Shown: piece by piece, positions 6,330 through 31,277 of the stretch
How the letters are laid out: each line of letters opens with the position of its first letter
Numbering within the stretch: position 1 is the stretch's first letter
Source of the DNA: Tubulanus polymorphus
Taxonomy: Eukaryota > Animalia > Nemertea
Reading direction: 5' to 3'
Length of the DNA: 64,000 nt
NCBI RefSeq assembly: GCF_964204645.1
Contig: NC_134030.1
Span: 19,428,210 to 19,492,209 of the forward strand
Notes under the pieces: generated by a model
The model's input: only the letters and a program-made list of their open reading frames with translations
What the model was told of the DNA's origin: nothing
Database searches by the model: none
Made by a program: the position numbers and the translations under genes

Positions 6330-6337
6330 TTACATTT
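6330..6337 (-). CDS. Tk: Probable terminal coding exon of the tachykinin precursor (...E-M-stop), followed by 3' UTR
   Basis: Very strong acceptor gtttctgtttttgtgtttttcag|AA ATG TAA. Phase 1 gives E-M-stop. AATAAA on the minus strand at 6030-6025, about 300 nt downstream. The coding part is too short to validate by itself. Confidence 0.55.
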
Positions 6338-7140
6338 CTGAAAAACACAAAAACAGAAACCGTTGAATGAAAATACAGTTGATTATCCATTTCGAAAAGT
6401 AAAGTTATTCGAGCAGCTATAAGCTCGGATTAACAGGACACACGAACGCGTCGAGTTGTGAGATACCGGTATACACCACCAGATGGCGTGAATAACCGAA
6501 AGTGTTCAGATTTTATAACGGGTCCATAATCCAGAATTTAGATTATTGCTCGCCCCTCGAAAACAATCTCAAACATAAATATCGTCACCAAATCCTAGAA
6601 CGATAAATGCAATTTATAACACGGTTTTTGGAGTAGTTTTCATCGATTTACTTCGCGAAGAAACATTGAATCGATTATAATCTGCAAAATACGTCGACAA
6701 CTGAGTGTATACCAGCGACACCTAGAGTCTCATTTACCATAAGTAGAATCCTTCAATTTTTCGCAGTAGTTGGAGTCCTACTGCACAGTAGCGACAGTTG
6801 ATGGATCCTTACTTGCCACAAGTGGAATCCTCCATCCATTCTTCCGCAGTAGTTGGTCCTGCTGCCTACTAGCGTCGCCTTCCGGATCCTCACTTGCTGC
6901 GAGTAGAGACCTTGATCCCCAAAACAGCCGTCCTATTGCCCTAATGGATCCTCGCACGTGCGCCCAGGATTCCAGGAGTCGACAACGCGCAGTTGGATGT
7001 TTACTACTGCGGCAATCGAGGATTTCATTTGTGGCAAATCAGGAAACACCAGGTGTCGCTTGTAGTTACTCGGTCTTCCACGCCACATCTAGTAGGAATA
7101 CCACTAAGATGAAATCATAAAGAGATAACTTCTGTTGTAA

Positions 7141-7359
7141 GGCTAAACAAAAATGATACCTTGTTTCTCCGCAGCGGCCGGGTCATTTTTGTAAAATATG
7201 ATAAAATTTATAGACAGTTCATTTCTATAGCGGCCGGGTCTGTTATGGTAAAATTGGTCACGATTTTAAAAAAAGTAATGTATAGGGCAGCTAGGCGGCC
7301 GGCCGGGTCAACATTTAAGCTCAGCAGAGCGGAGAAACAAGGTATCAATTTTTTTAGCC
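7141..7359. mobile_element. Second copy of the TAA-TSD MITE
   Basis: TAA|GGCTAAA...TTTAGCC|TAA, TIRs of about 32 bp, colinear with 3532-3739. Confidence 0.8.
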
Positions 7360-7656
7360 TAAGCATGCCAGATACTGTTGTATTCACAAATATCTGTATT
7401 TATCGCGGATAGATTTCGAACAGCAGTTTCCTCGTAATCTTCTACGATATTTTACGTTTTACGTAACTTTTCAGGATTTCAGTTCAAACAAGCCTTGATT
7501 TTATTCCGAAACCGCGAGTGTTATTTTACAAGATAATGTGTCAAACACATTGTTGCAATTGTTTCTAAAATAAACAAAGAAACTATAGCGGGATAGCTGA
7601 CGCCACGTGGCCTCGAGATTAACGGTTAACGGTACCGATAAAAAAGTTGCGATCCC

Positions 7657-7935
7657 AATCATTCGCCTGCCGGTTCAGAATGAATGAATGATTGTTTGAA
7701 TGAAATAGAACCGACATTTCCAATTATGTACTTCGATTTAAACAAACTGTTGTAAACCCGACCGCCGATCACACAACAATATCTGTACTTCGATTTCCGT
7801 TTCAAAATCAAACCCCCTGTTTCGCTCCCGGCAGGTGTGGTGGGTTTGTAAGGGACACCAAAATAAAAAAATTCAAACAAAATTTTTCAACCAAATTACT
7901 AACAGGGTCAATCCCTATTTCAAGACCAAAAAGCT
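7657..7935 (+). repeat. Unclassified ~280-bp dispersed repeat family H
   Basis: Shared cagtcgcttgccggttcag...ccggcaggtgtggtgggtttgtaagggacacc...ccctattt. Copies at 8415-8670(+), 13075-13300(-) and 37047-37330(+). Confidence 0.75.
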
Positions 7936-9654
7936 GCGATACGGCAATGTACCAATTAATATTGCCGATCAGTAACCGAGTCTAAAACTGCTATCGCGTC
8001 TCGTGGGCGAAAACCGTTCCAGCTTCTTGAATTAAACGCAAGCTATTCGAGAAGCAATGAGAACTTCTCCCTCAATATGAAACATAGTACGGTTTTCATT
8101 CGTTCGCAAAACACATTTCGAAAGATGATTCCTCGAGTGACCTTCGATGATCGCGGAAACAGGACTCGTTTTCAAAGCGACGATTATTTCGACGTCTCAC
8201 CTATTACTTGCAACCTGAACCTATAGATATGAAGGCTTAACGCCGGTTATATATTTCCGCAGGGGGAGGGGATTAGCCAGTCGACGAATGTTTTCATATT
8301 TGATAAGCTTCTTTCCTCGGGTGTGTTTTATATTGCACTCAGAAAAACAATAGACAAAAGGTTTGCATTCGGTTTTTTGAATAAAATGACTTTTCCGAAC
8401 GCCCGTCAAGGCTGGTCAGTCGCTTGCCGGTTCAGTTCAGTCGGACGATTATCAAAACGAACCAGAACCGAATTTACCGATTTTGTGCTTCGATGAAAAC
8501 AAAACATTATGTTGATCAACTATATGTGTACTTACATTTCTGGTTTCGAAACCAAACACCCTATTTCGATACCGGCAGGTATGCTGGGTTTGTAAGGGAC
8601 ACCGAATAAAAAAAAATCAAACGAAATCTACCAGGATCGACCCTAACCCTATTTTGCGATAGAAAAATACTAACTAGCTGACTGAAAGTCAGAAAAAGTC
8701 AAAGATTTCGGTTGTATACGTCTCCTCGGTATAGAATAAAACTCAACAAATTCTAGATTGGAGTAATATCCATGGTTTTAAGGAATGCTGTAAAAATCTA
8801 AACGCGAGCGAATCTTCCAAATAAGTAAAACATGTTCCGGGTATTGTTTGTTTCAGAAATGTTCCAGAGAATCATTAACTAATTTTTCGCTAAAAATCAT
8901 CATCAATTTTCACAGTTAAATGGAAAAAATATCATTTTCAATTATCTGTATCAAAATTGTGTGGAATATGTACAGTTAAGAAAACAAAAATTTTATCGAA
9001 ATGTTAACCGATAAATGATACGCAGAAATTGGGTAAACCTGTTTAATTCCGACGTATTCCGCGCCGATTTTTGAATAGATTTTTTATCAGGATATGCGCA
9101 ACGCGCCGAGGACGCTGTCAGTTGGATAATGTCACGGAAAGATGAGAATCAAATTTCTTTTTCAACGAAATTCGTAAAACCTTACGAGCAGATTGCGAAG
9201 ACGCGTCTTCAAACAAGAGCGGAGTAAATTTCCAACATTTCCGACGTGGCAAAAAACACCCCGCTCGTGAAACTTTATGTGAATGCCGAATGCGGGCGGC
9301 TCCGATTACATTAAGGGGACTGGAGGTGACGACGAAACAGGTTTTTATCAAACAAAACTAAATATACGGATACTTATATTCTACACCAACATTGTTTGAA
9401 TTATTCAGCATTACCGAGAATTCGAAAACGTTCGTTCGTAGAGGTGGGCGTGCAGCACTTTCGTATCGGGTGACTTGATCAAGGGGTCTGGCACTAACCT
9501 CAAAGGCATAAAAATGATTCATGAAGTGAAAATAGGTGCAACTGATTTAGCGGTGGAAATATGTCGTTTTACGTTTTTGTTGTATCTCTTAGTGATCTTT
9601 CGAACTGACAAACTTCGTTAAACATTTGTAGGTTGAACTGGTAGACTTCAAAAG

Positions 9655-9949
9655 TACTTTTAAGTTCACGATTGATAGAACACTATATCCGTGTTGACGC
9701 GATGTGGAGAGAATCCCACAATTATAACGAAAAAGTCCGAAAATGAAACTTCGAGATAGTAGTTTATTTCAACGTTTCGACTATATCCTAATAGTCATCT
9801 TCAGGAATAATGATTCCTGAAGATGACTATTATTCCTGAAGATGACTATTAGGATATAGTCGAAACGTTGAAATAAACTACTATCTCGAAGTTTCATTTT
9901 CGGACTTTTTCGTTATAATTGTGGGATTCTCTCCACATACTTTTAAGTT
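9655..9949 (-). mobile_element. Penelope-like (PLE) non-autonomous insertion: inverted pLTR pair carrying minimal hammerhead ribozymes
   Basis: 12-bp TSD tacttttaagtt (9655-66 and 9938-49), a 35-bp unpaired tail, and a perfect 110-bp inverted repeat (9702-9811 / 9829-9938). Each arm has CTGAAGA-t-GACTAT/ATAGTC-GAAA-CGTT. Confidence 0.8.
9831..9875 (+). ncRNA. Minimal type I hammerhead ribozyme motif (mirror copy on minus strand at about 9765-9809)
   Basis: CUGAAGA at 9836-42, 6-bp stem II, GAAA at 9862-65, palindromic ACGU stem III, GUU site, short stem I UUC/GAA. Confidence 0.65.
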
Positions 9950-10663
9950 GTATGCGATTAGAACGCGTAACCTCGGGGTGGGTTATACATATATAGAGCT
10001 ATGTTGTAATTAGAGAACTCTAAGTGGTTTTAGAAATTAAAATTCCGAAGTATCTCTCACCGATTGGTTGGTTGAAATGATGAACTTAGCGAATTACTTT
10101 CCAATGATTCATCAACTAATGAAGTACTAAGCATGTGATTCGTGAATTTCATAAACTGAAGTACCTTTAAGTCATTCGTCGGTTAGACTTGCAAATTCCG
10201 TAAGTGTTTCAAGTGTATTGTGATTTTACATATCATATACTACACTTCCGGTTACTGCCAGTAGGTTGAACTGAAGTAAACTTTTGGCGGTAAAGGTCCT
10301 GCAAGTGATTCGTCGGTTAAATAAGTGTACTTCTAATTGAATGGTGGTTTTAAGGGTTTGAACTAGTAATTTGCAGAGTACTTCTTTTTAAAGTTTTCGG
10401 GGAGTATAACTGATATCCTGCTGTTGAAGGACTTTTAGTTAATTCGTAGCCAAGCGATAAAAGGGTTCAATTTGCAAAAAGAATAATGAACTAGTTTTGA
10501 GCGAATCTCGGGATGGACTGACGAGATTAGAATATTGCAACTAAGCTATACTGAAATGAACACAATTCGTTCAGCCCCCGTAAAAACGAAAACATCTGTA
10601 ACTGGGTCATGTGGAGCGTTTGAAAAATTTCTACCTGAAAATTAATTCTGCGACCTTTAAACT

Positions 10664-10669
<6 letters not shown>

Positions 10670-10722
<53 letters not shown>
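10670..10722 (+). repeat. (CT)n microsatellite
   Basis: Read directly from the sequence. Confidence 0.95.
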
Positions 10723-10723
<1 letters not shown>

Positions 10724-11091
10724 AGATTAAACGAAAAAATCTATACAACAACAAGTGTTTTGTAAAGCATCGCGGGGGGATTAAAATAAACCGTGTGTAC
10801 GGCGTAATCTGCTTACGTCAGGGGAGTTAGTAAACAAATCAAAAACTTCGTGCGTCAATAACTTTTAAATCATCACCGCTTAGGAAAATACTATTACTAA
10901 TGATAATGATGATACTAACTATAATGACAATAGTCATATATGATTTAGCGCAGGTATCCAAACTAAGAGTCTGTTCAAGTGCACTCCAGATTTGGTATTA
11001 TTACCCCTAGCCTATAACTCTGTTTATGCATCATTCATCTCTCCCTGGGGAGAAGTTACATCCAAGCAGCTGCTAAGTGACAGGTTGTTTA

Positions 11092-11625
11092 CCAGGTTCG
11101 AATCCCTGCGACGGGGGTATGTGGCAAAGTCTCACGATGTCATCAGGTTCAACTCCCTGCGAGGGAGGAACGCGGCAGAGTCTCACGATGTCATCAGGTT
11201 CGAATCCCTGCGAGGGAGGAATGTGGGAGAGTCTCACGACGTCATCAGGTTCAACTCCCTGCGAGGGAGGAACGCGGCAGAGTCTCACGATGTCATCAGG
11301 TTCAACTCCCTGCGAGGGAGGAACGCGGCAGAGTCTCACGATGTCATCAGGTTCAACTCCCTGCGAGGGAGGAACGCGGCAGAGTCTCACGATGTCATCA
11401 GGTTCAACTCCCTGCGAGGGAGGAACGCGGCAGAGTCTCACGATGTCATCAGGTTCAACTCCCTGCGAGGGAGGAACGCGGCAGAGTCTCACGATGTCAT
11501 CAGGTTCAACTCCCTGCACGAGAGGAACGTGGCAGAGTCTCACGATGTCATCAGGTTCAACTCCCTGCACGAGAGGAACGTGGCAGAGTCTCACGATGTT
11601 AACAGGTCCGAATCCTTGCGAGGCT
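11092..11625 (+). repeat. 51-bp minisatellite, about 10.5 near-identical units, tRNA/SINE-head derived (A box + B box per unit)
   Basis: Unit caggttcaactccctgcgagggaggaacgcggcagagtctcacgatgtcat. GGTTCRAMTCC matches the B box and YGGCAGAGT is A-box-like. Diverged relatives at 23075-23225(-), 32305-32350(-), 36445-36560, 50600-50775(+) and 55445-55505(-). Confidence 0.9.
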
Positions 11626-14600
11626 GAGTCGTCCAGGGCGTTCATCCTATCAAAATGCAATACTTCACGCTTGTGCGTCGTCGGTCGGTGGCAATCCTAA
11701 GCAATCCTGGGCAGTAAGGTAGATTTTTCTATGGCAAGAAAGTGTGTTACAGACTCTTAAGAATATTATCTTCATTTTTTCTTAGTCATCGGGTTCGAAT
11801 CCTGATTAATACACACAAGATCGCGTGTTGTTTATCGCGAGTTCCGATTAGCAATGTTCCGGCTGGCTAGTCAAAGCTCAGACGATCGGAACCGATCGAT
11901 CCTCGCTTGCCGCAGCTAGCAGCCACAGAATCGATGTAAGCTTATGCGAAAAAAAACTAATTATTGTAAAGCTACGAAAAGAAATCGGACTATCTGTTTT
12001 TCCTATCGGATAAACGGCCAAATATCTACGGGCTCGAGAGCTCCCTTATTTCATCGTTCACTTGGCAACGATAATCCGTGAGCTCCGATCGATTTTCAGA
12101 AATCGGCAGGTGATTTCAAGATGATTGCTATGAAATCTTTCCGCGTGCGTGACGATCGAATAGTTGACGTAAAGAAGGTTTATATCAATATGCAGTCAGA
12201 ACCCGATATATATATTTACAATGTTATTCTACTAATCTATTACCATCTAGAAAACACATACGTATTGCCTCCATGACTTCAGGATACTTTTATCAGCGCA
12301 CTTTCAAAATTTGATCGTTCATACTTAGTTCAGAACTTCGCCCGGGACATTTTTAGTTGAAAATGAACTATAAACACCAGACATTAGACATTTTATCAGC
12401 GAATCATCGAAAACTAATCGTCCACTCTTCGCATGTGTTCAGTGCTTCACGTGAGACATTTTTAATTGAAAATGAACTACAAACACCAGACATTAGACAT
12501 TGAAGACATTGACACAAGCAAATTATCGAAAACTGGCCATCCAAACTTCACAAGTGTTCACAACTTCATCTGAGACATTCGTGATTGAAAATGAACTACA
12601 AACACCATTAGACATTTTATCAGCACACTTTTGAAAACTGATCGTCTACGTAGGGACACTGCAAGTCACGTGACCGGAATTAAAAAGGAGTTTGAATTCC
12701 CTATGTCAGGCTAGGATGACAAGCTTCATTGCAGTTTCACAAAACATATATCCCTAATCTCCTATCAAAAACTATAATTCCAGTGGTGCCATCTAGCGGG
12801 GAAGTGGGAGGTTATATGCGATCAACAAGGTGGGCGGACGAGTGATTTGATGTTCGGTCTCGGAGAATTAATCAAAATAAATCCCTCCTTTGTAAGATTA
12901 GCGGTCGCGTTTCCAATGGCTTCAGCGAATTAATGAATCCATTAATTTTTGCTGGATACGCTTTTTAAACGCGGCGTCGCCGGCGACGGCCGGGGGTCTT
13001 CAATCCATTGATGTCACAATTCAGAAATATTCCAGGTTGACTAATGGCCTACGTTTTAAGACTACGTTTTAAGTCGGTTTGTCGGAATCATTTGAAATTA
13101 AGACATTTATCATAAGCGAAATGCACCGATATTTTAGTTTTGAGTTCAGATTTGTCGGAGTCGGTCGTCCGCACCCGGCAGGCCTGTAGTGAGGGAAACG
13201 CGAGGGCGGATTCATTTTTAGTTGGGCCAAACTGAACGGGGGTATGTGGCGAGGCCTTCTCCGAAAGGAAAGAAATCTTTGAGAATATCCTTTCTGGAAC
13301 AAAATGAGGCGGGACCCTCGTAGAGGTCATCTATCAGGCCGAGGATAAATTAATGTTCCCGTTGTTCGAATACCTGAGGTCGTGTACGTATCGGATGTTG
13401 AACAGATCCAAAGAGAGATTGAAAATATTAGATTTTACGTAACGATTCGATCATACTCATCAACCTAAAAATATGACGAAACATATGAAATGTATATAGC
13501 GAGAAAAGCTGTGCTTTAAATGGCAAGGTCACTTCGGCTGTAGCTGGAGATTTCTTGAGTTTCGAGGCCCAAGCAAGACGTTTTATGACTGTTTGGAGCT
13601 ACCTGGTCTGATAAATGACACCTACGCATCGAGGTTACTTCTCTTCTCTCGCAACCTAGGAGAAACTGAGGGTACCTGACAAAAGATGACCAGTCGCGAG
13701 GCCTTAGTATTGTAGCTCTAAAGTTTTTTTCCGCTCTTTCGACCCAGGAGCAGCGTCATTTAGTCCCAGAAGAGACCATTGATACAATACCATTTACGAT
13801 ACTGGCGCATTCATTCACGGCATATCGTCGTAAATTAATCTTCCACAGATTTCGATTTACTTAAGGATGGAAATTTGGACTAATAACATGTTGGTGAATC
13901 TTCTGAATTAACGTCGCCGAGAAAACGGACTTTTTTCTCGGCAACGGGATGATCATCTTTTCACGAAGTTGTTGTCAACAGTTTTTCTTACTGTGAATTA
14001 ATTCGGATGAAACCGATCGTCTGGCGGCTCGGAAAATGACGTCATATCCATAAATAATGTTTCGAGAGCGAGACATGCTCCAAACCGCCCACCATCCCCC
14101 GTACGGCCAAAAAAAAAATCGAGCACAATATGGCTGACTCATGCCAAAGTTAAATCAGTCCAACTTCGATTATCTGACTTCATTAGGAATCACAGGTATC
14201 TTTAGACCACGACGAGTCTATGATGTAACAACTAAATACCAGTCTAACCTTATTTTTGGTTCTATAACCAAACTGATATTGAGACCAGTCCATGCTTATT
14301 TTGGCTCAATAGCTAATCTAACAACTTAAGTCCAACCAGTCCTAGATAATTTTGGTTCTATGTGTTATCTAACAACATAAGACCAGTTCCAGTTCATTTT
14401 GCTTTTATGAACACTTAAAACTAGTCTATGCTCATTGCTATTCTATGACCTATCTATCAAATTATTACTAAATCTTTTATATTTCATCACAATTTCAAGT
14501 TTAAAGTGGAAATAGATAGTTAAAATAACTTAGGATAAGGAGTTCATTTTAATTGAATAGAGTGAGAGGTTCCCCTCGTCGACTACTGACATCCTGAGTT

Positions 14601-14711
14601 GTTGTTAGATTGGCCAGAGTCTAACCGCTGATTAATTTTCAACCCAAACTTACGAGACCGAAGAGAACTCACGAAACATTATACGAATTGTCGATAGTCT
14701 GTTTAACTTAC

Positions 14712-14777
14712 CTACAGAGGAACGTTTTCCGCGTAGAGCGTGGAATCCCGTCGGGGTTCGTTTTTCCGACAATATTT
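14712..14777 (-). CDS. Tk: Tachykinin precursor coding exon 4, encodes TPTGFHALR-amide
   Basis: Acceptor tgtttctaattgtag| and donor GTAG|GTAAGT. 66 nt, phase 1-1. Reads ILSEKR-TPTGFHALR-GKR-SSV. Confidence 0.92.
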   Translation of the reverse strand, partial: KYCRKNEPRRDSTLYAENVPL

Positions 14778-15610
14778 CTACAATTAGAAACAGCGTAAAC
14801 ACGATAAGATTATAGAATTTCAAACGTTCTCTATAAGACTCGGAGAGGAGCCGTGTTAACCGGGCGTAGAGTGAAAACAACAAGACGAAAAGTACTTTAA
14901 TGGTGAACTATTTAAATGAGGACTTCGTGTCACCGGCTATCCCGCTAGATGGCGTGCGTAACAGTGCGACAACCCCGTCAAAATCTAGTTCATTTTGAAT
15001 GAACATTCATCTAGATTTTTAGCCTCCGTCGTCAGAAATTAGGCAAATCACTCCTCTTGATAAACACAGATGATCTTAGGGTTCATATTTAAGGTGGTTT
15101 TTAACAAATCATCATTCAAGGAATTTGGGAAATTATGGATAGACTTTAATCTAATACGAGAAGAAATCCGGGAGTTGTTGTTTGAGCGCACACTAGCGAA
15201 CCTGGTGAATCCTCGCTGCATCCTCGCTTGCCACAAGTGGAATCCTCGATTGCCACGGTCGAACGTAGAGTCCCCATGAAAGCTCGAGCTTTCACTACTA
15301 GTGTATACTAGCTTCATCGGGTAAATGAATGAGTGACTTGATGAAGCTGATGAAACTTCTTTACTACATTAGTAGCGAAAGCTCGTGCTCCACATAAAAT
15401 AACTAACTTTAGCACTACACATCTCCGAATCTCTGTATTCAAACATATCCAAAACAGATTTAGAATGTGAAAAAGCCTAGAGGGGCGGATCCATGAGCCA
15501 TATCCCATTGTATTCCAGATTCAAAAGGGCCCTTAATTATTCTATACCTTCAGTACACTGAGTGACAGGGAATCATCTGATGTCATAGATCTATGATCTA
15601 TAGATGATCT

Positions 15611-15900
15611 TTTTTTTTTTTCTTTCTATAAATTCTCTTTGTTTTGTTTCTTTATCTTGTTATCTTTGTTTGTTTGTTTTTTGTCTTGTTTTGTTCGTTT
15701 TTTCTTCTCTATTATAACTCAGGAGGGCGGTACATAACACAAGCACCGAGCTTCCTTGTACCGTCCTCGCTGGTTTGTTCTTAAAATACATTCTATATTT
15801 ACATCATTGTAACAATACAAATGTACGTATTATATAACCTATTGTATGAATATATAATGTAAAAACAATCGCAGTAAGTAAAGTTATTACTAATAAATAG
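15611..15900 (+). mobile_element. Probable L2/Crack-type LINE 3' UTR remnant
   Basis: T-rich tract, hairpin gagggcggtaca...acaagc..gctt..tgtaccgtcctc, and an AT-rich end with aataaa. Confidence 0.4.
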
Positions 15901-16006
15901 GGCACCTCCAGTATGTAAAATTATGAGGGGATTCGATAGATGTTGAAGACACCGTCGCCATATTTTCTAGGAAGGCAAAATCTATCTTGAATATCTTGAA
16001 TATTAC

Positions 16007-16072
16007 CTTGTGAAGCACGCTTTCCTCTAACTGCATAAAAACCATTTGGAGGCTGCCGTTTGACTGCATTTG
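16007..16072 (-). CDS. Tk: Tachykinin precursor coding exon 3, encodes pQPPNGFYAVR-amide
   Basis: Acceptor ttttaatattttacag| and donor CAAG|GTAATA. 66 nt, phase 1-1. Reads NAVKR-QPPNGFYAVR-GKR-ASQ (dibasic site, amidation Gly, dibasic site). Confidence 0.92.
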
Positions 16073-16222
16073 CTGTAAAATATTAAAACGAACGCATGTT
16101 TAAAATGATAGTTGTTTTCACAGCGAAATTTCGCTATGAGCAACTTCAGGGCGCCAAAAAAAATATGTTCGTTATAGCCGATAGTTTCCTAGACAGCGGA
16201 ACCTCGTTACAACGAACTCCAG

Positions 16223-16360
16223 GGGCCAGTTGCAGAGTCGTGACTTAAGTCCAAAAGTGGTCTTAAATTTTAAGACTGGTCTTAGGTAGTTGGATTGGCT
16301 ATAAAACTTAGTTGGTCTTAGACTGGTCTTAAGTCTAGGCCATGACTATGCAACCGGCCC
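16223..16360. mobile_element. PIF/Harbinger MITE family C, CAG TSD
   Basis: cag|GGGCCAGTTGCA...TGCAACCGGCCC|cag; inserted in a pogo-TIR-derived array. Confidence 0.85.
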
Positions 16361-17584
16361 CAGGACACCAGAAAATCTGTTCGTTATAACCGATAGACTT
16401 TTTAGACTGTGGAATAACCCCGTTGGAACTAACATCAGGGTATCAGAAAATATGTTCGTTTTAACTGACTGTTCTATCAGCGGAACCTCGTTACAACGAA
16501 CTTCAACGATCTGCTTTGATTTTTTTTTCTACACAAAAATGTTTATAATTAACAAAGTATATAAGATTTACAATATGGTATTTAGACAATACAATCTGGT
16601 TAAAACGAACCTTAGGGCACAAGGTAATCTCTCCATTATTATAACCGATATTGTTGATCAGACAATATATTGTTCCTAGGGCTTTATTTAATCTTCCTAC
16701 ATCGGGTTTTCTACGCAGTCAGCTTTAGCCGAAACATTATGATAAAAGTAAATGGCTAAAAAATTGATAAGTTAAAATTTTTATTACGGACATCAAGGCA
16801 CCAGAAAATAGATATAAACCTATTTATTCTACATCTGTGGCCACATGGCGGAAATTGAAAATTGATGTTCATCCCACGTGGGGAAAGAAATACGATAGTT
16901 TGCAAGTCGTGTTTCTGGTAGACTTCCAGAGATAGAGTTTCAATTTTTCAACTTAATCGCCGCGGTGTCTGGCTGATTCTAGTTCCCGGGAGCCGGTTAC
17001 ATTTCACTTCACTTCTCTTCGAAATTTGTCAATTTACACGTAAACCCAAGGGCTGCTTTTATGTTTGGTCTTGAATTCACTGTGACGTTAAAAGAGGACC
17101 TGAAGTGTTTGAACATCGCACTACTTTGACCAGACTTTATTGTATAGAAATCTGTTGTTTAGAAATCTTGTTCATTGTTTCGTATAAGTCCCGTTGGGTC
17201 TGATTCTAAAACTAAGTTCACCAACTCAATTTAGCTCAGAAATCCCTTTATAGAAGTTTAGTAGGTTTTTTCGCCTAGTTCATGGAGTTTTAAGATTTAG
17301 CCATTCCTCGAGAATTAAGCCCAGATTAAACGTTAGTTTTTCCAGATATCCCCCCGAACTAGGGTTTTAGTCTCCATAAACCCCTAGAATTCGCTGTTTC
17401 AATCGCTCTTCTCATAGAGCCCGTTATCTCACCTTTCCATCGAGGTCAAGTCATCCTCTTCCCCGATAATCCCAGTTTTCACAACCCTAAGAGCGCTGAA
17501 TTTCCCATACACAATGCCCAAACAGCTCGAGATTTAGTTTTTTCTGTAACTCTTATTTTAATTAGGTCCTTTCTAACCCACACC

Positions 17585-17587
<3 letters not shown>

Positions 17588-17641
<54 letters not shown>

Positions 17642-17722
17642 CATCATTATTATCATTATCATTATTATTATCATTATGATAACTATTATTATTGATGTAA
17701 TAATTATCATTGTCATTATCAT
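17588..17722 (+). repeat. (ATT)n/(ATC)n microsatellite
   Basis: Read directly from the sequence. Confidence 0.95.
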
Positions 17723-17923
17723 TAACTTTTTTCAGGGCATCGGCAGCTTCTATGAGTTCAGCCACTAGGCTTGTCGATGTCCTCTCTTTGCATTGATTGC
17801 CATTATTATTATGTTAATTAATCAATATGTTATTTATAATGCTTAGCTAAATAAAGATAATTATATTATATTCTACCCCTACGGTTCAGTTTCAATCCGA
17901 GAATTATACCATTTCTAACTTAC

Positions 17924-18104
17924 GTCGGTTGTAATCACTGCCGTGTTTGAGTTCCATTAGTCTCGTCAGTTCGTTAAGTACGAGTAGATTTTTGTTTTTG
18001 TCGTTACTGAAAGCGGATGACCGATCGATCGTCTCTTCAGATGAGCCACTTCTGTCCCGTTCAACGGGCGAAATGTCAGCGTTGAATATCGAGCTTAACA
18101 TCTC
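17924..18104 (-). CDS. Tk: Tachykinin precursor coding exon 2 (acidic/polar propeptide EMLSS...GSDYNR)
   Basis: Acceptor attgttttgttacag|GAG and donor CGAC|GTAAGT. 181 nt, phase 0 in and phase 1 out, no stops. Phases match both neighbouring exons. Confidence 0.8.
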
Positions 18105-21100
18105 CTGTAACAAAACAATACGATGCAAAAGATGAGCGCCTCGTAGCTTTGAGAAATCAATGGCTGCGGTAATAATGCAGCTTTTTCATCGGCTGTTCAG
18201 GATTTCAGACTCATCTAGCTGAAAACAATACTACAGTCACCAGACATTAGACATTTTATCAGCACACTTTCAAAAACTGATCGTCCACACTTCACATGTG
18301 TTCAGTACTTCACCTGAGACATTTCTAATTGAAAATGAACTACAAACACCAGACATTAGACATTTTATCAGCACACTTTCAAACAATGAACATCCACACT
18401 TCACATGCGTTCGGAATATCGCCTGATGCATTTTCAATAGAAATTGAACAGGCATTATAAATCATATCGGTGCACTTTCAAAAACTACTCATCCATAAGT
18501 TCAGAACTTCACCCGAGACATTTTTGATCGAAAATGAATTATAGACACGAGACATTAGACATTTCATCAGCTCAATTCAAGGATTTTACCAGCGTCCATA
18601 GCATGTATATGAATATCCAAACCTAATGATAAAATCAGTCCATCTAGCGGATGAATAGGTTAGTAGGTCAGTCATCTGTTAGGTGACCTTGCCCATACTC
18701 CAAGGTTTTCATTGTCACCACACGATAGGAGAAGCTGTTCCTATAAGTAAGTTCTAGGTGAATTTGAGATATTTTCGGAGGGCTTCAATTTGCCCCCAAT
18801 ACATGTAAAATCGCTGCTTTCATACAGGTATTCCTTTAGATTCGAATCTTGTTTAGTATAAGCCGCCAGAAAACGCTACTTTGCGGCCATATTTAATATG
18901 AAAGATTGACATCGGATCACATCCTGCTCGCGAACCTGTACCGAAAGACAAAAAATCAATAGAGATCGTCGAATTTGAAAATATCATATTAATACATTGA
19001 TGAATATATGAGCTCTGCCTCATGGCTATATTCGTGGCCATATATCGGTATTGGTATTTTGGATATATTCTTCAAAACGATTTTTGAAGAAGACTTATTT
19101 AACCAGTCGATTTTGCGGCTTCTTTCAATAACGATAGTTAGAAATATCATCTTGATTTAGAAAGCTCGCTTATTGGAACGCTGCCCATTGCCGTTTTCAG
19201 TGCGTAGGTAGATTGGCACAAAACTTTCATGGCACTCGGACGCCTTTTCATGTAATTGATTCTTCTCAGATTCTGTTCTACATCTTTTATTTCTCGAAGA
19301 ATTATGTAGCACCAGACATAATAGATATTTTATCAACACACTTTCAAAAACTGGTCGTCCACACTTCACCTGAGACATTTCTAATTGAAAATGAACTACA
19401 AACACCAGATATTAGACATTTATCAGCACACTTTCAAAAACTGATCGTCCACACTTCACATGTGTTCAGTGCTTCACCTGAAACATTTCTAATTGAAAAT
19501 GAACTACAAACACCAGGCATTAGACATTTTATCAGCGCACTTTCAAAAACTGATCGTCCACCCTTCACACGTGTTCAGTGCTTCACCTGAGACATTTTAA
19601 TCGAAAATGCCAGCACCAGACATTAGACATTTAATCAGCTCACTTTAATTCGAGAATCACTTTCGACTTTAATTTTCATTAATAATATCAGATTTTCTAT
19701 ATCGTCGTCACGACACAGGCCAGGTTTCATCAATGAGAGATGATACAAATTACAGGCAATTCATTAACAACAATTGGCATAAAGGATGACTAGAAAGTAT
19801 CTCAGTAGTTATTATGAATAAATGAATAGCAATGTCAATCAAAAGTTAAGCTGATACAATCGCATTCGCCAGAAGCGTACTAGATTACAGAGACGACGAC
19901 GTCTTCTATAGGGTTCACTACTGCGGGTAACCGAACATCTCAAAAAGCAATTACGTCATAGATCTCATTTTGTGATGAGTATAATCAGTTAATTTAGCAG
20001 AAACGCTAAAAGGTTGGCTGCGTTCCCATTTCAAAAATGAAAGTTATCCTCGAGTTTCTTGATAACACGATCGGTGAAATAAAAGCGAGATGGTTTTTTT
20101 TCAAAAATAAATATTTACACCGTATTTAGGCTAATCCGATGCCTGGGCGTTGTGTCACAAAAGACACGGCGAACTGGGGCCGCTGTGACGGATCCTGCGA
20201 GTGCAATTTCGCGGTCGCTTCCTAATGAAATTGAACGCTATTCTATTTTTCACACGTCGCGGGCAATATTTGCGGAGATAATGGATTAGAAGTTCTTCAC
20301 AGACACAGGCGCACACACCTGAGTTGATATCGAAAAAATCTTCCCTCGACATCGGCGAACCAATTCCGGAGAGAGCGCGCACGCAAACCCGGCTCCGTGC
20401 CTGCAACGAGCTTGTCGGCGTTTATTTCATCTCAAACTTTTAGAGGAACCTCAGTAATCTAATCGAAATGTTCATTCGCTCGAATGAAAGTAGATAACTG
20501 ATAAAATTGCAAACATAGCATCCCTCGTATTTTTATTTCTTTTTTATACATAAAAAGCGTGCATTAAAATAAGTGATTCGTTTCGTCGACGTCTCGCGAG
20601 TAATTTTCGTTTTACGACCGATCGGCGACCGGTTGGTCGTTCGCTGCAGTTAAAACACGAACTCGACGCCCGACGAAGCGACGGCGCCGTTTTGTGTCAA
20701 ATCATCATCAGACGTTCGGTCGAATAAAACCAATCTACAATTCAAACCGAGACGCGTAATTCGATTTCTTCTTCAACTGTTTATTTCGTGGCGTTTATGA
20801 AAATTCAATCAACGAAATGTCAACTCGAATTATCAGCAATTATTCGCCTTTTCCACGGTTGGAATTTTGATAATGGTCGGTGCTTTAAAAAAGTTCAGAC
20901 CAGTCGCGATAATGATAGTAATAGCAATAATAACAATGCTGATGATGAATAAAGATTCAGTGTTGTAGCGATCACGGGTTTTCTGCACATTTCACATTCG
21001 AATCGAAGGAAATGATATTGTAAAAGTTAATATCGTCTGGCATTCGAACCCGATATCGTAATTGGAGGAAATTGAGAAAGTTACGGAAATTGATGCGTGA

Positions 21101-21481
21101 TCTGGGTATCTCGGAGCCATCCTCTTTCTCTGGCACGTAAACGGCGCCACAAAGAAACGATCTAGCTACGCCCGATTTCCTTCAGCAATTAATGCGTACC
21201 ACACTATTACTTTATCTAAACAACGACTTTAAAATAGCATGGACAGCACATACATAAAATCTACTGGGCTTGGAAAAACTGATGTATTTCTGTCATAACT
21301 TTTCATCAGCTTTTTAGTAGTCGAATGATGGGTGAGAGATCTTTTTTTACGTTAACTGGAAAGGGGAAATAATATACACGGGAAAATAACAATATGGGTT
21401 TTTTTGCGGGATCGCTAATAAAGATTTCGGCCAGTCTCTCCGCAGGCACGTTATTCATTACAGAATAGAGCATAAACATCG

Positions 21482-21800: not shown

Positions 21801-22230
21801 AATAAGACGAAGCTATTTACAAACGATTTCAAATTACTGAGTGACAAGATAATTACAATTCAAAGATAATTAATTACACACACAATCTAAATTACTGAGT
21901 GACGATATTTGACTAGTAGTTAATTATCTAAAAACATTGAGAATGAATCCTGACCCGTGTTCGAATAGTTGTTGATTAAGGGAGGGCTGTTGAGTTTCGA
22001 TAAAAAGTGCTTCTCTAATTTTGCAATCTAAATCAGAAGATCCTTTATCTAAAATTTTGATATTCTTTTCGCTAAACGAGACCTGACAGTCACGGCAATT
22101 TGACGGATGTTGGCCAATTGCTGAAGTCTAAATATATATTACTCATTAGAAAATGAAATTTGTATTGTTTTTGCTTCTATGGACCTTAAATTATCTAGAC
22201 TATCTAGCTGAGATCTAATTAAAAAAATGG

Positions 22231-22313
22231 TTTGGATACCGAGCCTTGACTGTGCAGCAGGGCCCTCAAACATTTGGATACCGAGCCTTGACTGTGCAGC
22301 AGGGCCCTCAAAC
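22231..22313 (+). repeat. Perfect 42-bp tandem duplication
   Basis: tttggataccgagccttgactgtgcagcagggccctcaaac occurs twice. Confidence 0.95.
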
Positions 22314-22958
22314 GAAATGTGTCGAAAAAAATAAACAAATATGTATGTTTTGATGAACAAAAACTCAACCATTCGAAGTCATTTGTTCTTTTGAAAGCGG
22401 AAATGCACACAAGACGTCAACGACGTCTTTCAAATGTCTGGCAACGACATATATTTCATCATCAATGAAAAAAACCAAGACAAAGTTACTGCACTCAACG
22501 ACTAGAATAGAGTCTATTTTTAATCCACATGTTCAGAAAATGATCTCGGTAACGTTTTTAAGCTCGTCTCGGGTTGCAATCCCGCACCGTAGCATTCAAA
22601 TTACGTAGTCGGCCGAGTTTTGAATAATTAATCAAAACGGCTGAAGTTAACGATTAAATATATGCGTATGTATTCAGAATGTGCGTGATTTATTAAAATC
22701 TTCCCCGCTGTAAACGGACGCCGATTCAACTGAAAGCGCTGCTCGGTGTCTGCTCGGTCCGTGTTTTCTACGGACTATTATTCATATATCGTCAATTTTT
22801 GGCTGCATAAATGAATGGTTACGACAAAACTCACGCACGCACGCATGCACGCACGCACGCACACATACACGCACCGTGGGTTAAATGCCAGCCTATAAAA
22901 CTGGGCCCGGATGGCCCCATTCTTGAACTATTCAGAAAATTTACATCTTTACACTCGA

Positions 22959-23039
22959 CCTAGTTTCCTCATCGCGGGCCTAGTTTCCTCATCGCGGGCC
23001 TAGTTTCCTCATCGCGGGCCTAGTCGCCTCATCGCGGGC
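22959..23039 (+). repeat. 20-bp tandem repeat x4 (cctagtttcctcatcgcggg)
   Basis: Read directly from the sequence. Confidence 0.95.
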
Positions 23040-24061
23040 ATTCTAATCCGATGGGGTCGCGGGACAATGCGTCATCCCGCCCTCGCAGGGATTCGAAACT
23101 ACCGCGAGACTCTGCCGCGTGCCTCGTTAGCGGGCATTTGAAAACTGATGACATCGCGAGACTCTGCCACGTTCCTCCCACACAGGGATTCGAACCTAAT
23201 GACATCGAAAGACTCTGTCACGTTGGGTAACATGGTAAGTCAACTTGAGCGGAACCACTCCTCTTAAGGTCGAAAGCTAAAAACAGCGTTTAAAGCGAAG
23301 CCCTTTCAAACATCACACGATTCTAAATGTTAAACGCTCTTTTTAGATTGTTGCGATTTCCTTTAATCACAAAACATTGAACAACGCGGATCGTCCCAGC
23401 AGTTTAGTTATTTGCCTTTGAAATTCGGAAAACAGGAACGCGATGATTAATACATCGACTTGGCCAAACCGAGTTTATCCGGAGCCGCTCACTTGGGAAA
23501 CGAAAGATCACCCTTCAGCGCAATTAATTTTAGGAGTTATCCTTTGATATAAAAAGCGGTTCATATAACCGTTTTTGAAGTCAATTGGACCAATCATAAC
23601 TCGCGTGTTGACTTGTTTATCTGAACGTAACTGATTTTGATCAACTACCGCGCGATGAACTCGGTCTGAAGAATATTCGCGTCGATACAAACTGCGACCG
23701 TACATCGACGACTTTTAAAAACGCGCTTAACAAGGTGACAAAATATCTTAGTTTTTTCGCCGAACGAAATGAATTATGATCTTTTCGTTCTAACGGAATG
23801 TTTTTCGCGTCTTTTGTAGAGACGAACGTTTATTTCCGAGAAAAAAAACCCATTTCGCAAAAAGAAAACATGTCACATATTTGGATCCAAGGAATCAAGT
23901 ATTTTCAGCTTGTAACCTCTCCTGTCGGAATAACTCAAACCTTGTACCCAGTTCCAAGTTATGAGTTAGAGTTAACTCTGAGATAAAGTTAGTTCATTTT
24001 CAATGAGTTTACTCAGAGTTAAATCTTAATTCAGAACAGTGTAGTGTGAAACTGGGCCCAG

Positions 24062-24200
24062 GGGCCGGTTGCATAGTCGTGGCTTAGACTTAAGACCAGT
24101 CTAAGACCAACTTAGTTCTATAGCCGATCTAACAACTTAAGACCAGTCTTAAGATTTAAAGACCCCTTTTGGACTTAAGTCACGACTGTGGAACTGGCCC
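24062..24200. mobile_element. PIF/Harbinger MITE family C (opposite orientation), abutting a family D MITE at 23945-24058
   Basis: cag|GGGCCGGTTGCA...GGAACTGGCCC|cag. Confidence 0.85.
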
Positions 24201-24532
24201 CAGGTGTACAGAAAAAGCCCGTGACGACCGTATAGGCGACTAGCGATTGGTCCATTAACCTTGTCGAGAATACAGTACGTTCCATTTTAGGAAAAAGAAC
24301 AGGAACTCCCAGGGCAGAGGCTAGGGGTGGGGTGTAACATTTGAGAGAAGTGATTTAAAAATGATACGCACTCGTGCGATTCTGTCTGCCGGATGATGGA
24401 AGGTCATTATCGACGTTGACAAAACCTGGCAAATTCATCATTTATTCAGATTATAGAAATAGACTGCGCTTATTATCGATGACGTGTAGAAATTGTAGGC
24501 TAATTCTCTCTGAGTTTGCAGCGTTGACTGGT

Positions 24533-24890
24533 GGAGAGGGAGAGGTAGAGGTAGAGGTAGAGGTAGAGGGAGAGGTAGAGGTAGAGGGAGAGGGAGAGGG
24601 AGAGGGAGAGGGAGAGGGAGAGGGAGAGGGAGAGGGAGAGGGAGACGGAGACGGAGAGGGAGAGGGAGAGAGAGAGGAAGAGGGAGAGAGACAGGGAGAG
24701 GGGCAGGGAGGGACAGGAAGAGGGACAGGGACAGGGACAGAGAGAGGCCCAGGGACTGGGATGGGAACGGGACAGGGACAGGGAGGGACAGGGACAGAGG
24801 CAGAGAGAGGGACAGGGACCGGGACAGGGACGGGACAGGGACACGGACAGAGACAGGAACAGGGACAGGGACTGGCAGAGGCCAAGGGGA
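24533..24890 (+). repeat. Compound purine-rich hexamer tract (GAGGTA)n-(GAGGGA)n-(GGGACA)n
   Basis: Read directly from the sequence; it explains ORFs 24374-24904 etc. Confidence 0.95.
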
Positions 24891-25470
24891 GAGTCAGCGC
24901 CTAGCTATCCAACACGACAGTTTGTTCCACGCGAAAATAAGAATTAGCTCATTTTCATCTTTTTTTTCACCGCCATAGTTTTCTTATTAAACTGAAGAAC
25001 CCCAAAACACTATCACACGCGAAGCCTTTCAACAGATATCAGATATTTTACTCATCTTTAGTCGGTTTCGGATGCCGTTTTCGTTGATACTTGATTCACG
25101 AGTACAAACGAGAAACAAGAAACGTTCATACGATTTTGACTGAAATGTCAAACGAACTGAAGGACTGAGGAACGAGTTAACAACTAAACTAGCTACACCT
25201 GGTGAATCGGGCAGATTTTCGAAATTTGAAATGCGAAAAACGGCTAACGATAACTGACCGAACTTCGACTGCCAGAGAAGTAATCCTGAATTTACATTTA
25301 CTTATGCACACCATCCACTGGTCTTGTTAACCTTCATTTCAAATTAATTCTAATATTTTCATCATTTTTCCTAAGATTTGCTCCGATTCGTTTTGATTCG
25401 GTGTCCAAATACAAGCCTGCGCCACACCTACCGGCAGCGAAACTGAATGGGACGAGGCGCTGCGGGTAAC

Positions 25471-25782
25471 CAACGATATCATAATAGAACGATAACCACA
25501 CTCAAACGTGGTGAACGGATAATAAGATAAAAACCCACTATCTACAGATTAAAAGAATCTAAAAACAAGAATTTATTTATTCAATCTAAAATACATAGAG
25601 TACACAACGTTTCGATCTCATCCTAGAGATCATCGTCAGGTGTGACAACGCACCTGACGATGATCTCTAGGGTGAGATCGAAACGTCGTGGCTTATATAT
25701 ATTTTAGATTGAATAGAAAAATTGTTGTTTTTAAATTCTTTTAATATGTAGATAGTGGATTATTATCTTATCAACGATATCA
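25471..25782 (-). mobile_element. Second PLE-like hairpin insertion (different family) with hammerheads on both strands
   Basis: 11-bp TSD caacgatatca (25471-81 and 25772-82), a tail of about 40 bp, and imperfect inverted arms of about 120 bp (25522-25644 / 25649-25771). Confidence 0.8.
25650..25692 (+). ncRNA. Minimal type I hammerhead ribozyme motif with canonical GUC site (mirror copy on minus strand at about 25602-25643)
   Basis: Plus copy: CAC-CUGACGA-u-GAUCUC(uagggu)GAGAUC-GAAA-C-GUC-GUG. Minus copy: ACAC-CUGACGA...GAAACGUU-GUGU. Confidence 0.75.
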
Positions 25783-26896
25783 GAAACTGGAAATAACGTT
25801 TCGCGGGCCTTTGTCCCAATGTCGGACAGAGCTGGCGAGCGATGAACTAAACCTAGTGACGTCACCGTTTTCGCCGACTTCCTAATACGGGCATGTTATT
25901 GTTTCGTTGTTCCGTTCGGGGAATCGGATATAAACTGAAAATTAATTCATTTCGTCTCCCCTGAGACGAACGCAATTTGGCGGCGCGAATATCGATAACA
26001 TTTTAATAACCGACTTTTTATGACATTTTTTACGGCGAAAAAGATATATTGACGGACAGCTGAAATTTATCGTACTAATTACGAATTTAATTGCTCTGAC
26101 AATCGTAGAAATGACGGATACATTCTGCGCGTACTCAACCATGACTTGGGAATAATGAATAATTAATTTCCTTTTGGTTTGGAATAGAATTTTGATAATG
26201 AATTTTGAAGTGTTTTCAATTCTATCATTCTCACTTAGGATGTCGGGTACTAGAATGTTTGGGAGTAACTACAGGTTTGCCGCCAGGTGGCGTGATGATC
26301 ATTCCGCAGTGTTATGGTGTAAAACTAGTTCACTATCAATGAACTTTGAACGGAATTCTTAGGTTTCAAAATCGATACATTATCACATGACCCACACCCA
26401 GGTATTTGATAAATTCATAATTTTGATACTGGCATATCCTTTATTGTACTGCGCCGATTGAAGGTAACACAATTGTGTCGTATCTTGATTATACCTAAAT
26501 GATTACAGTTCTGGGTCCAGTTCCACAGTTCCGAGTTGGTATTTAACTCTGAATTGACTCATCGAAAATGAACTTACTTTAACTCAGAGTTAACTCCAAA
26601 CTCATAACTGCGGCACTGGGTCCCGATGATAATAATGATAATACCAATGTTTAGAATTCAGTTGACATCGAATTTGAAAGAAAAAACTTTATACTGAGCA
26701 CGTTGTATTTAGGTAGCCCGCATGACGTCATACGCATAGCAAGTTGTCAGTGCGCGTTCAGAAAATTCGTGCACCTGTTATTCATTTTTCAAACCCGTAT
26801 ATTTATTCAAGTTCAGTGTTTATCGAAAAACTAACATTTATTACTGGTACGTATATCGGTTAGTAAACTATTGAATGAGATCATAATTTGAACGGA

Positions 26897-27083
26897 TTCG
26901 TTCGTTCGTTCGTTCGTTCGTTCGTTCGTTCGTTCGTTCGTTCGTTCGTTCGTTCGTTCGTTCGTTCGTTCGTTCGTTCGTTCGTTCGTTCGTTCGTTCG
27001 TTCGTTCGTTCGTTCGTTCGTTCGTTCGTTCGTTCGTTCGTTCGTTCGTTCGTTCGTTCGTTCGTTCGTTCGTTCGTTCGTTC
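26897..27083 (+). repeat. (TTCG)46 microsatellite
   Basis: Uninterrupted tetranucleotide run. Confidence 0.98.
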
Positions 27084-29531
27084 TATCGTTCTATCGTAAA
27101 AATTACGACATCTTTCGCACAAGATCGAAAACTCTTTGTTGTCACACCGCGCAAAAAACCGGCTACCAAAAGTATTTGTGTCTCATTAATCATTAAACTT
27201 CAACCCTGGAAAAGAATTTTGAATTAATTCTTGGATGAGAATGGAACAAACCGCACCATCCTTAGAATTTTTTTTCGCGAAATCCGTTGCGAGCTCAGTT
27301 CGGAAATGCGCACTTCCTTTGGCGGACAATCGAACCACGCGAAATTCAGATCAAAAGATTTCTTATGATATCGTAATCCGAAGCCGATCCAAAAGGTTTT
27401 AGAAACAAAGTTCACAACTGGAGGATCTGAAAAAATCGGAACTCGGAATCGAGAAGGAAAATAAAATGAAATTCGCGGATAAAGCTGCACCGCATAGGTC
27501 GCTCTGCGTTGAATATCTTTGAAGAAAAGATTCAATTTCCGAGTGGGTTAGATTTAAATTCGTTCGTTTTACCAATCCTTTGTAATACGAAAAGCAACCT
27601 CGATAAGAAAACAGGTAATTTGCACACCCGAGCGACACCCAACAGCCTCTCCCCTCAATCCGCCCGTGAACGCGGTAAGATACCTACTAAACACAAACCC
27701 TTTGTTTAACTGTTCATTCATTCTTACATTCATAAATTTGGACGTTAACGAATCTGGCCGTCTTCGAGCCGAATTTCGTCCCGAAAAAGATCTACCCGCC
27801 CGATGTTGGGAAACCGTTCTTTCCTTGGAGATAAATCATCCTTCCAGGTTTATCAACTTGCAATTGCTTGTAAACTAATAGAAATTGACTAGCAATCAAG
27901 TTACATTAGATTACATAAGAGATGAGGGAAAACCCGGTTTAATTCAGCCGAAAAGAAGAAAGTTCTTGTGAAAATTGATTTTAGCAACTTTTCGTTTATA
28001 GACAAACAGCTATAACCAACCATACTCAGTTCTTAATTACCGAGATCGCCCGATCAGTACGATGATGGCTATTAGTATATAGCCGAATCATGGTTCAAAT
28101 ATGTAAAACCTTTTCTCGAGAACTTTTCATGTTTAGCTGAAGTGATGTGGGTACTCATCTTACACGGATATGTAATGTATTTTTTTCGACTCGGGATGAG
28201 TAGACCTAAAGCTACTTCAGGGCACGGTTCAACAGATCTTCGGGCTCAACTTTTCGTAAACTCGTCCATTCAAATCAATCCATTTCTAAACAGTTTATAT
28301 AATGAACATCGTCGATTTACGAGTTTTTTGCATAATTTCGTGAGGATCTTCGGGGCTCGAAATCGGCAGGAATTGGATTTTAACCCCGAGGTTTCCGAGA
28401 ATCAAAGTAATTTGCATCCGGGCCAACTGCTATGACCACATAATTCGTTAATTTCAGTTTTCTCTGACTCTGGGGCACGTTTTCTAACCTGGATGACGGA
28501 ATTGGTGTAACTGCTTTGTGTACGAAATGAATGTTATGCTCTTTTCTAAAAATTGTTTTCGCTCTATCCCATCTGCAGGAACCAAACGGATTCTGAGTTA
28601 ATGGCAAAAACACGTCTGTTAATACAACGGTGTGTAGGGTGAGCGGTAAAAATGTCTAGATCATTTTCAAATAATTCTCTTTTTATTCTATACGGGTTCG
28701 TAGTCCGAACGAATTTAAAAATACGAATCAGTTGAAAAATCGATATTTATACGAAAGACAGAGCACCGTCCATCACGGCGAAAACGAGGTTGCATACGGC
28801 AGACGATTTGTTAAATCGAGCGCGATGCGGTGACGAGCGAGATTCGGCGAGATTTGACGAGGAAGGGAAATACGCGTGAACTGATGTCGTAAATAATACC
28901 GCAATTTCCGGTAACGATTCAGTCGACTTCCGGTCGGCCTCGTCAACTTTTTCTGATTGATTGCTACAATTTATACGATGTTACTAGTATGTAACGTGCG
29001 TGCATTCTATCTAATCAATATCGCCTCCAAATGTAAACAATAGTTATGTACCATTTTGCCCCTTAAAAGTCGAATAGATATCGCGTAACCGCTGCCCTGG
29101 TAAGTTCAAAAAGATGTTGGGTACATTTTCTGCCCTTAATCTAACGTCAAATAGGCGTCATGTGATTGATTAACCTTACCAATAATAATCCTTCACCAAA
29201 GATTTCAAAAAGAAAGTCTATCGCCACTTCGTGAAATCATTATTCATAATTAAATAACATTATTTTACTGCAATTGTTTTTACTGAAATATGAAACAATA
29301 TTATGCAATAGTAAATTCATATAGTTACAATAATGTAAATATAAATTGTAAAGTAAACTGTAAAGTTGCTGCCAATATTTTATTGTAAAAATACAACAAT
29401 ATTTCTAACAGTGTATATCTACCAACGAGTCAAAGTTTTGAACTTTTTAAAAATTTTATAAATTTCGATAACTTACACACGAATGAGTCAATAGCGACCG
29501 AGGATATATCACGATATATTTATTCATTTAC

Positions 29532-29666
29532 CTTTACGTCGATTAGGTTACGATTCAACTGCTTCAGTTCGCTGACGATATCGTCGGTGTTGAATTCCGT
29601 TTCCAGTCCGGCTGCCGTGCATAAGATTATCAAAAACACCCCCATAACACTTCGCGTGTAATCCAT
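29532..29666 (-). CDS. Tk: Tachykinin-related peptide precursor, first coding exon (signal peptide + start of propeptide): MDYTRSVMGVFLIILCTAAGLETEFNTDDIVSELKQLNRNLIDVK
   Basis: ATG in gaaATGg context, 16 nt after a strong acceptor (cattttcgtttcag|, exon start 29682). Hydrophobic core VMGVFLIILC with A-A-G cleavage site. 45 codons ending at donor AAG|GTAAAT (phase 0), which joins in frame to the 18104 exon. Too short to appear in the ORF track. Confidence 0.8.
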
Positions 29667-31277
29667 TTCGATTCTTCGGTGGCTGAAACGAAAATGTTGA
29701 CGATATTGAGCTTTATCCGAGATATATTAGTCATATCTCGGGAGTTAACAGTTACTAACGGAAACACAGGAAGAATGCACGGGTCTCGTGCGAAGAAAAC
29801 AGGAAGGGACCGCCGCAACGAACGTAATCCCAATTCCAATAACAAATTCCATAGAATACATGGGGAAGTGTACAACACCATCTCTACGATCAGTTAGCAA
29901 TTCATTTATGTTGGCTTAGAAATTCTGAACTTAGTATTTTCTTCATACAGATTGCTGAATGCTTTTAATGTAAATTCGCATATGTTTAGTTAATGTATAT
30001 TGCTTTCGTTATGATAGTCCCGAAATCGTCAATATACCGAAATCTTTGTTTAGGGTGTACAACATTACTAATTTATTGCATTGCAACGTATTGAATCGAT
30101 TCACTTTTCATTTCGGTGAAGGTGTTTTTAATCATCGACCTTCCCGAATTTACGTTTTTTTTTTAACTCGCGAATCCAATCTAGCCTCGATAAAGATTTA
30201 CACTTTCTACCCTCGGTTTTATTATAGTTTGCTTTGATAATCAATTTCCTCAAAGAGAAGAAAAAAATCAATTTTGAATCTAAATCTACAATAATTTGGT
30301 GAGTAACTACTAGCGACACCTGGTGGATCTCATTTCGCCCTTTTCTGCAAATGTAAGTTAAAAGTCAATCCTCGTTTCGGAACTGAATCCTCGATTGCCA
30401 CAGTAGCGCTGCGGGCACCCACGCGGTTTTACTAGCGCATACGGTAGATTTTCATATCTTCGCTTGCCACTGCAGTCGGTTCGTCAACAGTGCGTTCGAT
30501 GCCTTTTTTCAGAATAATCGAGTAAAAATATTGCGTCGTCACTACCTACAGAGACTCGAAACTACGATCGACAATTCGCCACTTACATCATCAACGCGAT
30601 CTTGTTAAGAATAGCAATCGAATCGATCTATGAATTTGTAAGACGCGTTTATGTCTTTCAGGTCACACCAATCGATAAAATCCCTGTATCTAACAATTAA
30701 TCCAGGTCAGGACAGGTAAACCAATCATGTCAGTCGGTAAAAAATAGCGCTTATTGTGACGGTAAGTATTTTGTCACAGAATTTCACAATATGAAATAAA
30801 TATGACTAATTTTTTTTTTCAAATCGATCGATTTGATCAAAATGACTGCTTTTGCAGTCTAAACCGCGAAATCGAAATATTGACTGTTGAAAAATCTAGA
30901 TTTAATTGTAATTGAAGCAATAAAACTAACATCGACACGCACGCCGAACCCGTTAAATAGTGCAGGTTTGGGTTGAGAAAACAACATATCAGCGTCAGAG
31001 CAATAATAAAAAATTACGTACGTCAAAAACTAACTCACTGGTAGGCTAGAGGCTAGTTCACTAATTACCTCGTAGAAGGAGACATCTTCCAAAATGGCTG
31101 ATGTTGTCTTGATGATTAATAAATTTTGTTACGCTTTTTTCTTTTATTACATCTAATGCCACCTTGTAATCATTCACATTTAAAACCAACCCTTGTCACA
31201 TCAACATGAAGCACTAAGCCCAATAACTGTGATGCCCGTCCTTCAAAAAACTCCAAACAATTTGGTTATCTAGATCC

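Follow-up and report, generated by a model that had tools for sequence, protein, structure and literature searches.

Most animals possess neuropeptides of the tachykinin family. Tachykinins (TKs) and tachykinin-related peptides (TKRPs) act in general as short-range neuromodulators and in gut signalling (PMC6880623), and those of abalone, which are expressed mostly in ganglia, signal through Ca2+ and cyclic AMP (cAMP) at nanomolar levels (PMC9521575). Within the phylum Nemertea, TK precursors have been listed for ten species (PMC8557429; Thiel et al. 2021). The gene considered here, LOC141907422, lies in a 64,000-nucleotide stretch of the genome of the palaeonemertean Tubulanus polymorphus (contig NC_134030.1, positions 19,428,210 to 19,492,209, hereafter the window), and with a probability that we put at about 0.93 it is an endogenous TK (TKRP) precursor gene. 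Its predicted products share a (p)QP N-terminus, a GF-x-[AG]-x-R-amide ending and KR/GKR processing sites with the closest described annelid and mollusc members, namely Platynereis TK2-2, Aplysia apTKRP-2b, abalone Hdh-TK1-3, Anodonta Anc-TK and scallop TK-1/2. The annelid and mollusc peptides are supported by mass spectrometry or have had their receptors assayed, whereas those of Tubulanus are predicted.

The firm basis for this assignment is formed by the gene structure, the reading frame, the identity with a RefSeq protein and the whole-length correspondence with published nemertean precursors. The features of the gene are given below as window positions; every exon is on the minus strand, and the exons were translated one by one.

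29667-29682, minus strand: untranslated portion that opens coding exon 1, preceded by an acceptor-like AG at 29683-29684
29532-29666, minus strand: coding exon 1, 135 nt, residues 1-45, comprising the signal peptide (about 1-20) and the first part of the spacer
17924-18104, minus strand: coding exon 2, 181 nt, residues 46-105, spacer
16007-16072, minus strand: coding exon 3, 66 nt, phase 1-1, residues 107-127, cassette 1 (KR-peptide-GKR)
14712-14777, minus strand: coding exon 4, 66 nt, phase 1-1, residues 129-149, cassette 2
7066-7103, minus strand: last coding exon used instead by RefSeq isoform X1, acceptor at 7103
6330-6337, minus strand: last coding exon of our model and of RefSeq isoform X2, 8 nt, completing E, then M and stop
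6025-6142, minus strand: candidate polyadenylation signals, ATTAAA at 6142 and AATAAA at 6030, 190-300 nt past the stop

Spliced together, the exons give a frame of 151 codons plus TAA without an internal stop, made up of 45, 60, 21, 21 and 1 whole codons per exon, three junction codons (P, E, E) and the stop. All four introns are of the GT..AG type, with sizes of 11427, 1851, 1229 and 8374 nt and phases of 0, 1, 1 and 1, so that the five minus-strand exons of the original prediction, with their AG/GT sites and phases, were reproduced by exon-wise translation and a check of the splice sites. The acceptor-like AG at 29683-29684 would imply a further, non-coding exon upstream. Long open frames give no evident sign of other protein-coding genes in the window, a statement that does not extend to short exons, which were not searched.

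A frame search with exon 2 returned one protein, 100% identical: XP_074653162.1 (151 aa), described as 'uncharacterized protein LOC141907422 isoform X2 [Tubulanus polymorphus]'. It matches the predicted 151-aa open reading frame exon by exon over the same 151 residues and likewise ends in E-M, and on the RefSeq side it carries neither name nor function. The gene had been presented at the outset as hidden, and as likely to be missed or truncated by automated annotation; this view has to be given up, as RefSeq holds the identical protein together with a second isoform. The gene is already known, being correctly annotated in RefSeq, with a sister-species counterpart published as a tachykinin in 2021. 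That the locus is annotated but unnamed fits the lack of a Pfam match described below.

The second isoform, X1 (XP_074653161.1, 161 aa), takes its last exon from the acceptor at 7103, a RefSeq feature absent from the first reading of the sequence, and leaves both peptides unaltered. This exon runs into a dispersed repeat with 77-bp units (76-81% identity to arrays near 43.5, 44.7 and 46.4 kb) and may be an exonised repeat. The 8-nt last exon of the model is for its part the weakest part of the gene structure; it consists of DNA unique within the window, and its acceptor at 6337 has the top score across the 14.7 kb below exon 4. The main mRNA could accordingly differ from the model, either by ending at the 7103 exon or by skipping one of the 66-nt cassette exons: RefSeq does list X1, exons 3 and 4 are both phase 1-1 and could be skipped in frame, and other nemerteans have a single cassette. 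We regard such a main mRNA as unlikely, however, because the 6337 acceptor scores highest, because its product ends like the transcript of the sister species, which has both cassettes, and because the X1 exon extends into repeat DNA. A different dominant isoform is possible alongside the tachykinin reading and would leave the family assignment unchanged. That the gene gives a spliced mRNA is supported indirectly, by the RefSeq model and by the transcript of the sister species.

The translated precursor has the organisation of a neuropeptide prohormone. Exon 1 begins with a signal-peptide-like profile, with Arg at position 5, a hydrophobic core at residues 6-17, over which 9-residue windows reach a Kyte-Doolittle (KD) value of 3.26, and A-A-G at 18-20; this agrees with the signal peptide that had been claimed, which was judged here from hydropathy only. 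The spacer that follows had been called acidic and is indeed net acidic, although only mildly so (17 D/E vs 11 K/R over 85 residues). The sole dibasic sites in the whole protein are four KR pairs (at 110, 123, 133 and 145), which flank both peptides, and Gly stands directly before the pairs at 123 and 145 as amide donor. The two KR-peptide-GKR cassettes of the original prediction are thus present, one in each 66-nt exon, and would yield the following peptides, the processing itself being predicted.

16026-16055, minus strand: predicted mature peptide 1, (p)QPPNGFYAVR-amide, residues 112-121, [M+H]+ 1130.57 with pyroglutamate (pyroGlu), 1147.60 with an uncyclised Gln
14731-14757, minus strand: predicted mature peptide 2, TPTGFHALR-amide, residues 135-143, [M+H]+ 998.55

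Phe at -5 and the position of a C-terminal Arg-amide are present in both (FYAVR-G, FHALR-G), and both match published spiralian tachykinins, which upholds the identification as a tachykinin-related precursor. Near-identical peptides in the supplement of PMC6880623 are Platynereis QPPQGFHAVRa, scallop YGFHALRa and Anodonta pEYGFHAVRa, the last being the bivalve peptide that the original prediction had given as pQYGFHAVRamide; its stable-fly peptide, APTGFFAVRamide, is absent from the tables of that review. In the living animal, the signal peptide would bring the precursor into the secretory pathway of neurons or of endocrine cells in the gut, where prohormone convertases would be expected to cleave at the four KR sites, a carboxypeptidase to remove the basic residues and an amidating enzyme to convert each Gly to an amide, while the N-terminal Gln of peptide 1 would probably cyclise. 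The resulting pQPPNGFYAVR-amide and TPTGFHALR-amide may in turn serve for neuromodulation at short range through a tachykinin-type rhodopsin G-protein-coupled receptor (GPCR), which by analogy with abalone and Aplysia could signal via Ca2+/cAMP.

The precursor closest to the model is tachykinin_Nemertea_Tubulanus_polymorphus comp21864, from a transcriptome (PMC8557429, Suppl. 1), which is collinear with it over all five exons. Like the other orthologues used here, it was taken from the PMC8557429 supplement, and all comparisons with the sequences of Thiel et al. were made by eye, without an alignment tool. Both have the signal peptide, a spacer containing VLNELTRLMELKH, a pair of KR..GKR cassettes and, following S-S-x, a tail of two residues. 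No residue differs within VLNELTRLMELKH, with which exon 2 closes, and identities of 17/19 were counted for the exon 2 end, 16/22 for exon 3 and 18/22 for exon 4. The two differ in their tails (S-S-K-E-I in comp21864, S-S-V-E-M in the model), in their peptides (QPPQGFYAVRa and PTGFHAMRa in comp21864) and in the first half of the spacer, which has diverged. The Pacific and the Atlantic animals called T. polymorphus belong to two different species (PMC8468679), and a T. polymorphus transcriptome derives from San Juan Island material according to a nemertean toxin survey. It therefore seems that comp21864 is not identical to the model because it probably comes from a Pacific animal of the other species, its link to the San Juan Island data set being our inference.

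The listed precursors of eight other nemerteans (Cephalothrix, three Lineus, Cerebratulus, Notospermus, Nipponemertes and Paranemertes; PMC8557429) represent one gene each, with a similar spacer and with (Q/D)P-x-x-GFYAVR-GKR in the place of cassette 1. These sequences have one peptide and no counterpart of exon 4. Exons 3 and 4 of Tubulanus are both 66 nt long and phase 1-1, and they are identical at 31 of 66 bases against 16.8 expected (shuffle p 0.0002). By codon position the identities are 12/22, 14/22 and 5/22, the third being at chance level, and the flanks of the two exons have nothing in common. Judged from this pattern, the two exons are an old duplication kept by protein constraint, one that arose before the two Tubulanus species separated. 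Exon 4 may have been gained in Tubulanus or lost in the other nemerteans, both being possible since molluscs and annelids also have at least two peptides per precursor.

Motif searches single out the same two exons. The loose motif KR..G[KR][KR] (GKK/GKR/GRR) has 24 matches in the six frames of the 64 kb, only two of which also end in F-x-x-x-R-G-K-R; these are on the same strand, 1.3 kb apart, and both sit within AG/GT-bounded 66-nt exons. A genome-wide DNA pattern for the cassette motif gave 8 matches vs 4 for its reversed control, and an upstream KR was found in only two of the 8, both in this window. The motif scan of the window revealed no additional peptide exons within the introns, no second locus resembling the precursor was found in the genome with the RefSeq protein as query, and three DNA patterns aimed at a further TK-like gene in the genome yielded chance matches and one repeated element. 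Protein searches, for which single exons and the RefSeq protein served as queries, returned only the RefSeq protein itself, and the main texts of the literature matched the predicted peptides only in unrelated papers.

Several results weigh against a TK precursor. Two sequencing runs over positions 13300-18900 contain genomic contigs crossing exon-intron borders, and none of the joints of the model is among those listed. The orthologous peptide of Lineus longissimus is absent from the mass-spectrometry files of PMC8557429, and in the table of that paper the Tubulanus transcriptome is without a TK receptor. Pfam assigned no family to any exon or to the RefSeq proteins; a weak 'Bradykinin' match (E 1.3) was dismissed as chance. 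Three TK-receptor-like exons found in the genome, covering transmembrane segments 6 and 7 (TM6-TM7), could not be distinguished from exons of luqin-type receptors. Finally, residue -3 is Ala in both peptides, which departs from the strict FxGxR-amide consensus with its Gly.

The last of these points loses force in the light of the accepted members of the family. Gly at -3 belongs to the textbook FxGxR-amide consensus, and many accepted members have Ala or Pro there; Ala occupies this position in the TKs of Anodonta, Crassostrea, scallop, Platynereis and all listed nemerteans. At the Aplysia receptor, activity depends on Phe, Arg and the amide, Gly can be replaced by Ala without effect, and potency is higher with pyroGlu (PMC11365428). 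The Ala residues also bear on whether the peptides are ligands of a separate, natalisin-like (FxxxR-amide) sister system that has a receptor of its own, and not of a canonical TK receptor. Drosophila DTK-6 (FVAVRa), which activates the natalisin receptor, could be cited in favour of such a system, as could the presence in the genome of three TK-receptor-like exons.

C4:4075898-4076098: TK-receptor-like TM6-TM7 exon (L017), query for the other two
C2:7140842-7141042: TK-receptor-like TM6-TM7 exon (L016)
C4:22980610-22980807: TK-receptor-like TM6-TM7 exon (L018)

All three carry the tachykinin-receptor TM7 motif, L016 and L018 being 75% and 61% identical to L017 (61-75% identity to the query exon). 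Two of them were compared with solved GPCRs, where NK1R/NK2R/NK3R were the best matches (E about 1e-19, the next family at 1e-10). They may represent an expansion of TK receptors, or one or two of them may be luqin receptors. A natalisin-like system nevertheless seems very improbable: natalisins, which share the loose FxxxR-amide end and have a receptor clade of their own, have been reported from Panarthropoda only and the host here is a nemertean, Ala is frequent in accepted TKs of annelids and molluscs and neutral at the receptor of Aplysia, and a single TK receptor is listed for each of five other nemerteans (PMC8557429).

The ends of the peptides likewise bear on whether the gene is endogenous in function. 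Tachykinins have been recruited as secreted agents in the glands of cephalopods, the jewel wasp and mosquitoes (PMC6880623), and nemerteans are toxic, so that a product used against prey or in defence, in the proboscis or skin mucus, could be envisaged. We consider this hardly probable, however, as the peptide hardly varies among palaeo-, hetero- and hoplonemerteans and resembles the endogenous TKs of annelids and molluscs, its C-termini being Arg-amide and not the FxGLM-amide of vertebrate-type and gland tachykinins. Moreover, the locus is the only one in the genome that matches the family and is hence needed as the endogenous gene, and the nemertean toxin survey, which included Tubulanus, makes no mention of tachykinin.

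The introns and the remainder of the window hold further elements. A perfect 110-bp inverted repeat lies at 9702-9938, in the last intron. Each of its arms contains a minimal hammerhead-like core (CTGA-GA, a 6-bp stem II, GAAAC), so that one copy would be in sense orientation in the pre-mRNA; Rfam gave no hammerhead match for this repeat. The arm belongs to a young high-copy repeat, with 1071 candidates of which dozens are 96-100% identical. An older fold-back at 25522-25771, in the first coding intron, has 121-nt arms that are 88% complementary and a hammerhead-like core per strand. At 11093-11623, a 51-bp minisatellite of 10.4 copies has long open frames in both directions. One of its readings, R-F-N-S-L-R-G-R on the plus strand, has the form F-x-x-x-R-G-R and was rejected, its strand being opposite to that of the gene; this mimic of an amidated peptide cassette is probably due to chance. 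The CpG observed/expected ratio of the window is 1.3, that is, there is no CpG depletion.

As an endogenous TK precursor gene, LOC141907422 can be named a tachykinin precursor, and little else about it is new. The locus does provide the exon-intron layout of a nemertean tachykinin gene, in which each peptide is encoded by one symmetric 66-nt exon, and it offers the masses of two peptides and three loci of candidate receptors for deorphanisation, of which we have found no case so far for tachykinins in Nemertea. It is conceivable, though we think it quite improbable, that the TK system has multiplied in Tubulanus, with a second peptide gained through exon duplication, as many as three receptor genes of the TK type and perhaps another TK-like precursor. 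If this were true, and if the two peptides preferred different receptors, Tubulanus would provide a spiralian parallel to the split between tachykinin and natalisin.

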